DNA of 64,000 nt from Octopus sinensis (GCF_006345805.1 NC_043011.1:64058464-64122463), one strand, 5' to 3'. Shown: positions 370 through 63,664, numbered from the stretch's first letter. Notes: generated from the letters alone by a model not told the origin. Numbers and translations: made by a program.

Positions 370-406
370 ATGATAACGTATGTTTTAATTTCCTTTCTCA
401 TTATTT
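370..406 (+). CDS. Secreted Cys-rich family paralog A, exon 1 (signal peptide MITYVLISFLII)
   Basis: ATG at 370, 37 nt, GTAAGT donor at 407, phase 1; same length and phase as exon 1 of B, C and E. Confidence 0.75.
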
Positions 407-748
407 GTAAGTATCTACATATTATATTTCTTCTTTTATATATAAATTCGTGTAGACGTCAGCAAGTGTAATTATATGTTATCTAAATAGACATATTTTT
501 ATTTCAACAACTAAGGGCTGTTTAATGACCAGTCACACCTATTTTTACACCTTAGCGACGTAATGTTGAAGAATTGAAAAGTATGAATAGATGCGATATA
601 GAATAGCGCAGTGTGAACATTAACACGTAACAAAAATGCTAGGGCAAGATATTTATAAAAGCCAAATATGGCAATTTGCTTATGTAATCATTTATAAAAT
701 CTGAAACATATTTATTCATATGTGGGAATAATTCGACATGCGTCTGTA

Positions 749-1320
749 TATTGTGTTGTCTGGAAATTTCGCACCGATTTTTAAAAGAAAGAAAACAGGT
801 CAATAAATATTTCCCATTACATTTTTAATCAGCCAAGTATGAACCATCTTGTTGCACAATGCGTGTCCATCTTTCCTTTAACTTGTAAATACCCTCTTCC
901 CAGAAATAAGGTGGTTTCATGGCAAAGAATTCATCAAAGATATCTTTTTACGTCATTCAAGGAATTGAAATTTTTACCATTAAGACTATTCTGCAGAGAC
1001 TTGAATAAGTGGAAATCCAAAGGAATAATAATATCTGGTGAATATGGAGTGTGGGGTAACACATACGAACCAGGCTGCTGCAATTTTTGTCTGGTTCCCA
1101 AAGCATCAAGTGCCGAAAAGGAAGTTTCTTATCGTCCATTTTTAAGGGTTACAGAATTAATACAATTTATAGGAACATAAACTTTTCACGAAAATATAGC
1201 TTAATCTGTGCTCTATTTGGAGGTGTAGTCAAATCCTATTTTATGGACTCAACCATGTTCTAAAATAAATCAAAAGGTAAGTAACTATAAATCGGTATGA
1301 ACTTTCCGGACAACCCAATA
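749..1320 (-). mobile_element. Internally deleted mariner with both TIRs
   Basis: TIRs TATTGTGTTGTCTGGAAATTTC / GAACTTTCCGGACAACCCAATA; minus strand encodes decayed PYSPD..DFHLFKSLQNSL...GIYKLKERW. Confidence 0.8.
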
Positions 1321-3322
1321 TTTTGTCTAGCCATTGCGATAATAACAATATATGCATGTTTCTGAACGAAGCATCAGTCGAGTATAGAACGGGAGTAACA
1401 GAATTAGTTGACAAAAAAAAAAATAAAAGATTATCTTATGAATTTCATTAGGTTTCACATGCTTCTGTTATCAGATGCGGCGGACTCATTGTTAAGTAAC
1501 TGGGAAACACCTTATAGTTTCATCGGAGACTCAAATATGAAGTGCGGAAGTTATAGAATGTTACTGAGGTACTTTGCTAATTTATAGCAGAAAAATTTAC
1601 GAACTAATTAAGTTTATTCCTGTCATATCATTTTCTGATATATATATATATATATATATATATATATATATATGTGTGTGTGTGTGTGTGTGTGTGTGTG
1701 TGTGTGTGTGTGTGTGTGTGTGTCTGTGTGTGTGTGTGTGTGTGTGTGTGTGTGTGTGTGTGTGCGTGCATGTGTGTGTGTGTATAGTTGAAATTTGTAG
1801 AAAAAAGACGAAGATATACGAGGGGGTACTGAAAGGACCTGGAATTATACGTTATTGAGGAGATATTTCTCCACAATAAAATATATTAAACCAGCGTAAC
1901 TTGGATAAAAATATCGCTACAAGAGATTTAAATGTTTTCATAGAGACATTATATATATATAATATACAGAAAATTGGTACACCTGGAAAACGATGATATT
2001 TAGTCAAAACCGTATTCTATAAACTCAGCTTGTTCAAGTGTTCTAAAAGATAGTAAAGTTTTCAAGAACTCAAATGTCAGTTAAATAGAATTGAAATCTG
2101 ATGATTATTCAAAGAACGAAAGCGCTAATGTAACTTTATCAGCATTATATATAATAATATGAGGGAGTCTAATGCCAGGCTTACAAGGAAAAAATATCTG
2201 TATAATTTAAGAGTTAGTTATGTAAGACTATATATTACTTAATTGTTAGGTGGTCTATTTATTACGTAGTATTACATTTATGTAAATAAGTTTAATATTA
2301 ATTAATTCTTTGGTCAACTATATAATTGAGTAAAATAATAAATCTATAGATACTGCATACATATTAATTATATATTTAGTTTATATAATAGGTGTGTATA
2401 TAATTGAACCATTTCCTATTTTTAATTCTAATATATATAGATTGTATTAGCATTATCTACATTGCTTAACATTAAGATTGTTAATATAAACTAATTAATG
2501 AGTATAAAATTATATTTAGATGTTGATTAAATATATAAATAATTTAATTTAATGTATATAGATTAAATTACAGTATTTAGTTTTCACTTAATGTATTTTT
2601 GTATTTTATATATATACAAACACATTTTATTTCCTAATAATAATGATATATTATAGTTTATCATTTTTTTCTTATATATGATAAACTTTTATATTCATAG
2701 ATATAATAAATATATATAACTTATTATTTTTTTATTGACACAAGAATATATTTGTTAACATATTTCCTATTTTACAAGATTATATACTTATATTCATTAA
2801 TTTATCTAATTAATTATTTAATTGTTTTTTATCATTAACCTGACGAGTGACTATATTTATATTGAAAGGATATTATTATCATTTCTTATATATAGCCACG
2901 AAACAAATGTAGTTATTGTAACGAATATATACGTTTTATGTATTATTTTGCACATTACTTAATCATTGATGCATGTTTTTCCTTATATTTAATATTTCTA
3001 TAAGATGTAACTCTTCTAAATGGTATAATTTATTTTTTTCAGTATTGAATTGAGAAAAGGTATTTTTTAAAATTATATATATAAAAATATATATATATAT
3101 ATACACACACACTTACACATACGCACATATATATATATAAGGCTCCATAGATAAATTGATAGATAGATACATAAAAATATTTAGATTACATTTCCACATT
3201 AAATATATTCCGAGATAATGAAGATATTTACTAAGTGAGGGCTTTAAATATTATCCATGGGATAACATAACCTGTTCTCATATACTCCTGTATCTTTCAT
3301 TATCCAATATTCAAAATTTCAG

Positions 3323-3422
3323 GTGTGGACTCATACGAAATATGTCCCGAAGCGGGGAGAAGACGTTGCGATTTACCTATTTATTATTTTCACAATACCA
3401 AGTGGGACCCTCATTTTTGCAG
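3323..3422 (+). CDS. Paralog A exon 2 (C-VDSYEICPEAGRRRCDLPIYYFHNTKWDPHFC-R)
   Basis: tttcag acceptor, 100 nt open in phase 1->2, donor gtatat; WDPHFCR end shared with paralog B. Confidence 0.85.
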
Positions 3423-3562
3423 GTATATATTACTGTTACCCTTTAGGATTAGGGAGACGTAAATTTAAATAGCTATTTATTGACACAGATTCATAATCTT
3501 AATATTTGTGTGTCTGTCTGTCTGTCAGTCAATCTTTCTGTTTTATGTGATTCTGTATTACG

Positions 3563-3942
3563 GAGGCGCAATGGCCCAGTTGTTAGGGCAGCAGACTCGC
3601 GGTCATAGGATCGTGGTTTCGATTCCCAGACCGGACTTTGTGAGTGTTTATTGAGTGAAAGCAGCTAAAACTTCACGAGGCTTCGGCAGTGGGTGGTAGA
3701 GAAACATGATGTACCTTTACAAGTCAAATTTGTATCACCTTGCCTTCTTGTTTCTTTTGTGCCTGTAATTCAAATGTGCCAGCCTTGTCACATTCCGTGT
3801 CATGCTGAATATCCCCGAGAACTACGTTAAGTGTACACGTGTCAGCGAAATGCTCGGCCAGAAGCACGTTAATTTCACGAGCAGTTTTTTCCGTTAATTG
3901 GATAACATTGAAGCACTCGTCATCGTAAGCGACGGAGTGCCA
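3563..3942 (+). mobile_element. tRNA-derived SINE (GAGGCGCAATGG head, ...GACGGAGTGCCA tail)
   Basis: Pol III A/B-box-like head; head recurs at 32700-33063 and 50328. Confidence 0.8.
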
Positions 3943-61521: not shown

Positions 61522-61770
61522 AAACATTATTGGTGAATTGAAGAAATGGAGCTGAACGCAGATTGAACAGAAATCGTTTTATTTCATTCTACACGTGTTT
61601 CGAAAGGCACAAATTACCAAATCCGATTGAATAATATGGTCAACAATATGGTCCCATTATTCAATCGGATTTTGGTAATTTGTGCCTTTCGAAACACGTG
61701 TAGAATGAAATAAAACGATTTCTGTTCAATCTGCGTTCAGCTCCATTTCTTCAATTCACCAATAATGTTT
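61522..61770. repeat. Near-perfect hairpin, 114/115-nt arms, 20-nt loop
   Basis: 61522-61635 versus 61656-61770; one indel seen. Confidence 0.95.
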
Positions 61771-62309
61771 TAATTTCAATTATCCGCACCAACGCACGGT
61801 TGCAACGCCAGATGGTTGTACCTCCAACCGTGCTGTTTACTGCTGTGATTTTTGCTACTAAGGTATCGGTTAAACTTTTGATTAATCTACTACAAGATTA
61901 TTCATCTTTCTATTTCACATAATATATATATATGTATATATATATGTATGTATATGTGTATATATATATGTATATATATATATATATATATATATATATA
62001 TATATATATATATATATATATATATATATGTGTGTGTGTAAGATTATATACGTATGTATCCGTCTGTATAATAGGTAACTGCACGTATATATACTTAATA
62101 TTTCTTATTTCTTATTTATTATTTATTATATATTATTTATTATTTTTTGAGTATGCATGTATGAATAACTGCACGTATATATATTTTATTACTTATTCTT
62201 TGAGTATGCATGTAAGTATGAACATAAGGAGTGGCGTGTGTGTGTGTGTATGTGTAAGCATAGATTTTTGTATACTTTTACGCATATGTGCACTTATGTG
62301 TATATATGG

Positions 62310-63085
62310 ATGCGTGTGTGTGTGTGTGTATGGGTACGCATGTATATGTGTATGTGCGTGTATGTGTATATGTGTATGGATGTGTGTGTGCATATATGTA
62401 TATGTATGTATGTATATGTATGTATGTGTATATATATATATATATATGTATGTATATGTATATGTGTATGTGTATGTATTTGTATGTGTATGCATGCGCG
62501 TATATGTATGTATATGTATACGTGTGGGTGTGTGTATGTGTGTATATATGTATGTATGTATGGGTGTATGTATGTATGTATGTATGCGGATATGTGTATA
62601 TGTATATGTATATGTATATATATGTATATATGTGTATATATATATATATATATATATATGTGTGTGTGTATGTGTATATGTGTATATATATATATATATA
62701 TATGTGTATATATATGTATGTATGTATTCGTATGTAGGTGTATATGTGTGTGTATATATATATATATATATATATATATATATGTGTGTATACATACATA
62801 TATGTGTATATGTATATATGAGTATATAGGGACTTGTGTGTTGTGTGTGCATGTGTGTATGTGGATATGTGTGTGTATGTGTGTATGTGTATGTGTGTGT
62901 ATGTATATGTATATGCATGTATATGTGTATGTATGTATATGTATATATATATATATATATATATATATGTAGATATATGTATGTATATGTGTGTGTATAT
63001 ATATATATATATATGGGTGTGTGTGTATGTATGTGTGTATGTATATGTGTGTGTGTGTGTATATGTATACATATGTGTATAGGTA
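62310..63085. repeat. Complex (TG)/(TA)/(TATG) microsatellite
   Basis: Direct. Confidence 0.95.
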
Positions 63086-63313
63086 TAAGTGAGAATTTCC
63101 TTATTTACCTAAAACTCTATTCTTCTATATATTTTTATATTTTTTATTCTTTTTTTATTCTTTTATTTATTCTTCTATCTAATATACCACTGACTCCTTG
63201 ACCACTCCCCCAAGTATGATTTTTTTGCGCTATGCCTACCCCCAAAAAGTCCCACACCACCACCCTTATAAACCTGCCTAAATGTATAAATGCCAATACA
63301 ATTCTTGTTAACT

Positions 63314-63364
63314 AGCTTCCTGAAGATTTCTCTTGAATGAAACAGTTCTAGTCCCGTAGAAGCT
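63314..63364 (+). ncRNA. Type I hammerhead candidate with canonical core
   Basis: AGCUUC-CUGAAGA-uUUC ucuu GAAu-GAAAC...G-UA-GAAGCU; stems II and III imperfect. Confidence 0.55.
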
Positions 63365-63564
63365 CCTTCTATATAATAAATTAATTTTACTCTGCTATGT
63401 ATTGAGTACCTTATTTACTGTGGTTAACCCCGAATCAACCCGGGACCTACAAATATATATATATATATATACATACATGCATATATATATATCATTAAAT
63501 GTATATAACGTTCAATAAATTTAGTCATGAGATGAATAAGTAATATTTTACTCTTAAATTTTAG

Positions 63565-63664
63565 GTATGGTGACGGGAGACAATTGTACAAGGAAGGCGA
63601 AACTAGAATGTGATTTTCCTGAAATACTTTTCAAAGATTTCGCTCACGATGATCTATTTTGCAA
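63565..63664 (+). CDS. Paralog E exon 2 (G-MVTGDNCTRKAKLECDFPEILFKDFAHDDLFC); gene continues beyond the window
   Basis: aaattttag acceptor, 100 nt, phase 1->2, gtatat donor; conserved C-x7-C-x-F-P...D-x2-F-C. Confidence 0.9.

Follow-up and report, generated by a model that had tools for sequence, protein, structure and literature searches.

What kind of proteins are encoded by a row of small genes in a 64,000-nucleotide stretch of Octopus sinensis DNA (NC_043011.1:64058464-64122463), and how far does their family extend? The original prediction for this stretch, here called the window, with positions counted from its first letter, was a hidden tandem family of five genes for small secreted proteins with six cysteines: A, B, C and E, with a degenerate copy, D. 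We find that the window copies are a small part of a very large tandem array restricted to octopuses. Their domain is confidently predicted to be a three-helix bundle, and with moderate confidence we favour the view that the array encodes secreted or membrane-tethered binding modules built on this bundle, to which the N-terminal domain (RGM_N) of the repulsive guidance molecules (RGMs) is either distant kin or a convergent counterpart.

Genes A, B, C and E all lie on the + strand in head-to-tail order, and the four peptides that had been quoted for them were each located on that strand, at the positions given for them. Those of exons 1-3 that fall inside the window are flanked by AG/GT and are equal in size between copies (37, 100 and 88 nt, with phases 1/2/0, exon 3 being seen in A, B and C); spliced together, the three exons give 75 codons. 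The AG/GT-flanked exons bear out the proposed tandem set and its phases. The sizes proposed for exons 1 and 2 also stand, while exon 3, put at 88-89 nt, is 88 nt in A, B and C and never 89 nt. The remainder of gene E is outside the window, so this gene was read for exons 1 and 2 only. The cysteine spacing of A, B and C is C-x7-C-x16-C-x8-C-x7-C-x10-C, and the fuller consensus suggested earlier, C-x7-C-x-[FL]-P-x3-F-x5-D-x2-F-C-x8-C-x7-C-D-x10-C, is followed exactly by these three genes and by E up to the window edge. The N-termini are hydrophobic, for example MKAVIIFSLFLF in gene B, and look signal-like by hydropathy. Hidden Markov models (HMMs) of the exons, run on both strands of the window, returned no copy beyond A, B, C and E, save an exon-1-like piece at 51708-51744. 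The features of the four genes are listed below, where L001 denotes the collinear region of O. bimaculoides.

370..406, + strand: gene A exon 1, 37 nt, MITYVLISFLII plus one base; ATG, GT donor, hydrophobic; nhmmer exon-1 profile E 1.6e-8
3323..3422, + strand: gene A exon 2, 100 nt, cysteines 1-3; AG/GT flanks; family exon-2 HMM E 3.6e-15
7100..7187, + strand: gene A exon 3, 88 nt, cysteines 4-6; AG/GT flanks; family exon-3 HMM E 4.9e-14
16076..16112, + strand: gene B exon 1, 37 nt, MKAVIIFSLFLF; kept in O. bimaculoides L001 2793-2829
18828..18927, + strand: gene B exon 2, 100 nt; AG/GT flanks, family HMM; ortholog L001 3960-4059
20027..20114, + strand: gene B exon 3, 88 nt; AG/GT flanks, family HMM; ortholog L001 4818-4905
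24214..24282, + strand: gene B candidate last exon, VATELLLCMQLNKHYITVSALF and stop; strong acceptor ctttctttccattacag followed by G; AATAAA 14 nt past the stop
35989..36025, + strand: gene C exon 1, 37 nt, MKISIFISFLIV; exon-1 profile; ortholog XP_052830339
39815..39914, + strand: gene C exon 2, 100 nt; AG/GT flanks, family HMM, XP_052830339
43828..43915, + strand: gene C exon 3, 88 nt; AG/GT flanks, family HMM, XP_052830339
46011..46088, + strand: gene C exon 4, 25 codons and stop, hydrophilic tail YFRTIKDWKDPDTMLPHVIDMDEMK; matches the XP_052830339 C-terminus; good acceptor
58535..58571, + strand: gene E exon 1, 37 nt, MRIYSFICLLVV; exon-1 profile; kept in L001 from 22762
63565..63664, + strand: gene E exon 2, 100 nt, cysteines 1-3; AG/GT flanks; family HMM E 6.5e-4

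When 1.84 billion representative proteins were searched with a HMMER profile, 10 of them matched at E < 0.001 (E 4e-29 to 4e-4). All were Octopus proteins, annotated as 'uncharacterized' in O. bimaculoides (LOC128249835, with protein XP_052830339, and LOC128249786/851/865/866/910/943) or as 'hypothetical' in O. vulgaris (CAI9735829/37/41), and they fall on one chromosome per species; among these representative proteins the family is thus lineage-specific, as had been proposed. The domain of every relative shows the spacing C-x7-C-x16-C-x8-C-x7-C-x10(11)-C. The best match, XP_052830339, is the ortholog of gene C, with 76% identity over the mature protein and a RefSeq model of the same four exons, and the annotated O. 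bimaculoides genes, distant members included, have exons of about 37, 100-103 and 88-91 nt followed by a tail exon. In six-cysteine spacing, exon plan and chromosomal array these uncharacterized genes are therefore like those of the window, which are single-domain, whereas the O. vulgaris models are multi-domain fusions of tandem copies. Given the ten profile matches (best E 4e-29) and the preservation of exons, frames, splice sites and all cysteines in O. bimaculoides, the gene set stands far above chance.

Window positions 13236-63578 are collinear with O. bimaculoides L001 (CM046618.1:49.70 Mb) at roughly 80-87% identity, which sets the window apart as DNA of another Octopus species; the three O. 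vulgaris loci compared have no overlap with it. This region holds an intact, unannotated ortholog of B, the annotated ortholog of C, the D relic and exon 1 of E, and the position of E exon 2 is an assembly gap there. The annotated O. bimaculoides members extend from 49.57 to 50.20 Mb, an array of at least 0.6 Mb in which unannotated copies are interspersed; in O. vulgaris the matches are spread over 15.43-17.26 Mb of OX597831.1, about 1.8 Mb, and two loci there each contain 7 separate tandem copies (7 copies per 65-90 kb). The tandem genes are therefore real, and five is not the size of the family, since the array is very large in both species.

The family is already present in RefSeq and GenBank as unnamed 'uncharacterized' or 'hypothetical' proteins for which neither a fold family nor a function has been described. 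No paper on it came up when the literature was searched, whether by accession or by topic, and Pfam contained no family scoring above its own cut-off for the window proteins. A word-indexed protein search gave no match for the B protein and only two known members for the family alignment. In a 15-billion-protein collection, neither protein C nor the candidate B protein of the window had an exact match, so that 'hidden' is a fair label for the window copies, which are in no public protein set.

Current annotations miss the family or mis-merge its members. In the annotation of O. vulgaris OX597831.1, 7 copies at L003 10001-79509 are merged into CAI9735841 (293 aa), and 7 copies at L004 10001-91858 into CAI9735829 (373 aa). 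Two intact-looking members on O. bimaculoides CM046618.1 are absent from the RefSeq annotation: the B ortholog at L001 2793-4905, and a member upstream of LOC128249866 at L007 6273-7390.

An AlphaFold2 model of the 62-residue B domain, built from an alignment of 16-17 sequences, reached a predicted local distance difference test score (pLDDT) of 91 and a predicted template modelling score of 0.74. It places helices at residues 2-15, 19-22, 29-42 and 47-61, with two cysteines on each of the three long helices. In the model of C the domain has a pLDDT of about 90 and the hydrophilic tail is disordered. On these models the domain is confidently predicted to be a three-helix bundle. Comparison of 22 domains showed the six cysteines, Ala8, the aromatics at 19 and 28, Asp25 and a few hydrophobic positions to be invariant or nearly so, with the other columns varying. 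The fixed cysteine scaffold and the variability expected by the original prediction were thus found; the variable parts are helix surfaces, as judged from the AlphaFold2 model and column conservation, rather than loops.

A Foldseek search of the PDB with the B and C models returned nothing significant, retroviral matrix proteins, for example, appearing at E > 1. DUF19/CPG4-type domains are helical, cysteine-rich and extracellular, and a loose likeness to them had been suggested; it gained no support, as Pfam returned no match to them for A, B and C with E as high as 10, nor for 17 family members with E as high as 1. Mollusc signalling proteins of the Aplysia attractin type are likewise small, secreted and helical with six cysteines. 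Their cysteine spacing is unlike that of the family and no Pfam match to such families was among the results. The family thus presents a confidently predicted fold for which no PDB neighbour, Pfam family or literature was detected.

The only repeatable remote signal, weak but specific, was to RGM_N. PF06535 was the commonest weak Pfam match (10 of 17 members, lowest E 0.0018), and RGMB was the top PDB match for two family profiles (E 0.002 and 0.005), all other families having E >= 0.1. Comparison by hhalign with the N-domains of human RGMB and RGMA, the sequences of which were taken from PDB alignments, gave 73-77% probability over 31-32 columns. The core common to the family and RGM is D-x2-F-C-x2-L-R-x2-A-x-C-x7-C, with identical C-x8-C-x7-C spacing, and the HMMER alignment of the family to 4UHZ_B includes the core motif F-C-x8-C-x7-C together with likeness beyond the cysteines. 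A word-indexed search with the RGMB N-domain gave no match. As a control, the columns of the family alignment were shuffled 200 times under three schemes. The real score of 25.6 was reached by 0 of 200 shuffles in each of them, the maximum being 14.4 when all columns were shuffled, 17.3 when the six cysteine columns were held fixed and 18.8 when shuffling was confined to inter-cysteine segments; the similarity to RGM therefore exceeds what cysteine spacing provides. The RGM N-terminal domain consists of three alpha-helices with six cysteines in three disulfides (PMC7354924). The RGM_N structures (PDB 4UHZ, 4BQ6, 6Z3H) share three helices and six cysteines with the predicted bundle of the family.

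The architecture around the domain is different. A full-length RGM comprises the N-domain, a von Willebrand-type domain containing an autocleavage site, and a glycosylphosphatidylinositol (GPI) anchor, whereas the family proteins have a single domain and a short tail, in about 95-125 aa. Among 8 distinct annotated relatives (12 sequences tabulated, isoforms included), 6 have a hydrophobic C-terminal stretch, defined as a terminal 12-residue window of at least 1.8 on the Kyte-Doolittle scale. Small and polar residues precede these hydrophobic tails, which have the usual look of GPI-attachment signals. To judge from hydropathy, most annotated relatives would therefore resemble the GPI-anchored RGMs in this respect, and their tails point to membrane tethering over free secretion. 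The tails of gene C and of its ortholog are acidic and hydrophilic; the terminal window scores 0.18 in gene C and 1.42 in the B candidate.

Gene C, at 100 aa, is the sole complete gene in the window, its last exon having been recognized through the O. bimaculoides ortholog XP_052830339. The candidate last exon at 24214-24282 would make the gene B protein 97 aa long. Its AG, reading frame and stop are retained in O. bimaculoides L001 from 7393, which is weak support at a neutral divergence of ~15%. We were unable to reproduce the complete 106-aa open reading frame (ORF) claimed earlier for B: of the five downstream ORFs of 31 codons that follow an AG, none was convincing in its acceptor context, and the one compared with O. 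bimaculoides has lost the AG in that species and contains a stop. Candidates for B were filtered by conservation in the O. bimaculoides ortholog; that at 20201 was rejected as lying within an indel region, and that at 30689 for a stop in O. bimaculoides. The last exon of gene A was not found by tblastx and blastn with paralogs or by scans for acceptors, ORFs and polyadenylation signals, the tails having no homology between paralogs. A similarity between A and C (8732/45053) was rejected as a last exon, its frame being incompatible with phase 0.

Read-through of the exon-3 donor yields short in-frame tails, VRYSSLFTV and a stop in B (20115-20147) and VRYLSY and a stop in A (7188-7211); in O. 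bimaculoides B the read-through ends after one codon. Such tails being short and in frame, unspliced transcripts would still encode the entire six-cysteine domain.

The rate of change was estimated from the ratio of non-synonymous to synonymous rates (dN/dS) between the window and O. bimaculoides by the Nei-Gojobori method. For the mature part, dN/dS was 0.34 in C and about 1.25 in B, the latter from few changes (4.5 synonymous, 24.5 non-synonymous); the ratio was 0.56 for the two genes pooled and 0.17-0.19 for the signal regions. All cysteines, frames and splice sites of B and C are retained between the two species. Among the window paralogs, synonymous sites are saturated (proportion of synonymous differences, pS, 0.6-0.9; of non-synonymous differences, pN, 0.3-0.5). 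With pS saturated and pN lower, the duplications must be old and the scaffold under long-term constraint, and much of the difference between paralogs is a matter of age. The sequences indicate that the family evolves fast. Diversifying selection, as implied by the idea of hypervariability, was not shown, given the saturated paralogs and the ortholog ratios of C and, from few changes, of B.

On this basis we propose the following working model. The array would encode precursors of about 95-125 aa, each with an N-terminal signal sequence that exon 1 and the first part of exon 2 supply, a single domain of 55 residues shared between exons 2 and 3, and a short tail, not homologous between paralogs, encoded by the last exon. 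Since each helix carries two cysteines, the helices are probably stapled to one another by three disulfides. Ala, two aromatics, one Asp and a few aliphatics would form a small, fixed hydrophobic core, and the helix surfaces would be free to vary. Hydrophilic tails such as that of gene C would give a soluble secreted protein, and the hydrophobic tails of most annotated relatives a GPI-anchored or otherwise membrane-tethered one. The products would most likely be non-enzymatic extracellular binding modules, soluble or at the cell surface, with binding surfaces that diversify as the genes are repeatedly duplicated in tandem and their sequences change fast. The secretion of the proteins, the pairing of their cysteines, the GPI anchors and the binding role are all putative here. 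The RGM N-terminal domain belongs to GPI-anchored co-receptors and grips BMP/GDF ligands; the family domain is probably related to it, distantly and as a stand-alone module, or else has converged on it.

Several observations weigh against this model. The RGM_N score was 12.5 bits (gene C) against a Pfam gathering cut-off of 24.2 bits, and the RGM alignment covers about 31 of 59 columns, in the middle of the domain only. The RGM residues that contact BMP/GDF form an Arg-Gly-Asn/Asp-Leu loop after the fifth cysteine (PMC7354924). This loop is not retained in the family, which has C-D-x-[YF]-F. Foldseek, with a confident model, retrieved no PDB neighbour, RGM included. The interspecies rate of gene B looks neutral, so that this gene could be decaying or drifting, and the last exon has only a candidate in gene B and was not found in gene A. 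We hold the odds of true homology to RGM_N to be about even.

It is nearly as plausible as not that convergence in a local motif accounts for the likeness to RGM_N and that the family represents an independent, possibly de novo, helical fold of octopuses. The Foldseek result and the restriction of the alignment to the middle of the domain speak for this, as does the cysteine spacing at both ends, C-x7-C and x10 in the family compared with C-x4-C and x21 in RGMB. However, two independent profile searches brought up RGMB alone among PDB families at E < 0.1, shuffles that preserve the cysteine spacing never attained the real score, and both domains are three-helix, six-cysteine bundles, that of the family by AlphaFold2 and that of RGM by published description (PMC7354924). 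Soluble effectors directed at the outside or at conspecifics, such as venom or salivary, antimicrobial, pheromone or gamete-recognition proteins, would also have a signal-like N-terminus, small size, a disulfide scaffold, a tandem arrangement and fast change, and the hydrophilic tail of gene C and its ortholog fits free secretion. We nevertheless regard them as an unlikely, if serious, explanation of the family: no Pfam match was obtained to any venom, antimicrobial peptide or pheromone family, the hydrophobic tails of most annotated relatives better suit membrane tethering, and positive selection is not demonstrated by dN/dS.

That the window copies are mostly decaying pseudogenes, with the family functional elsewhere in the array, appears highly improbable. 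None of the four window genes is annotated in public protein sets, D is a dead exon, dN/dS of B is near 1 between species and no last exon was established for A or B; yet A, B and C have open frames through all three exons, as E has through the two in the window, and GT-AG sites and every cysteine are kept in the exons present despite saturated synonymous sites between paralogs. Moreover, the O. bimaculoides orthologs of B and C are intact, that of C being the four-exon RefSeq model.

Under the favoured reading of an octopus-only array of secreted or tethered binding modules, the genes matter in that lineage-specific tandem surface or secreted genes are prime candidates for cephalopod novelties in chemotactile sensing, skin, neural wiring, immunity and reproduction. 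If the RGM_N link is true, the family would represent a rare detachment and radiation of a growth-factor-binding module. A bolder and distinctly doubtful scenario is that octopuses detached an RGM-type BMP-binding module and expanded it to dozens to hundreds of stand-alone copies, mostly GPI-tethered but in some cases soluble and with fast-diversifying helix surfaces, as a lineage-specific repertoire of cell-surface proteins that bind cystine-knot or other extracellular ligands or serve as decoys for them. Were it true, this detached-module repertoire would be comparable to the octopus protocadherin expansion.

The remaining copy of the original prediction, D, was recovered in part:

51708..51744, + strand: copy D exon-1 relic, MTIYIIISFLIT; nhmmer E 0.0034; CT instead of the donor GT

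Exons 2 and 3 of D were not found with DNA and protein HMMs at very loose thresholds. D is thus present as a piece of exon 1 and not as a degenerate whole gene. At the matching O. bimaculoides site (L001 around 18952) the relic has no GT donor either, and must therefore be old; by sequence, D is an old dead first exon. A separate stretch at 49597-49626 (+), HCLIGLFESC, is similar to the exon 3 core (C-L-I-G-x4-C); with stops on both flanks and an adjoining repeat, it is probably a chance resemblance.

An Rfam scan of the window gave no match, and ten other window ORFs had no Pfam match. A repeat at 49529-50285 carries a 145-aa ORF (49632-50069, minus strand) without a Pfam match; by eye only, this ORF resembles the tail of a long interspersed nuclear element (LINE) reverse transcriptase, and copies of 92-94% identity occur in O. 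vulgaris L004. Intron 2 of gene C contains an interspersed repeat of about 2 kb (39916-41926) with an ORF at 41063-41380 (minus strand) and no Pfam match; three copies of about 91% identity were found in O. vulgaris L003, and inverted fragments lie at 59370-60404 in intron 1 of gene E. Downstream of gene B, 5.5 kb (24429-29906) have no counterpart in collinear O. bimaculoides, owing either to an insertion in the window or to a deletion in that species. TA/CA-type repeats yield many spurious long ORFs throughout the window. Microsatellites are present at 14521-14821, (GATA)n, at 15342-15572, (AAG)n, and at 62340-63087, a roughly 750-bp (ATGTAT)n block that sits in intron 1 of gene E.

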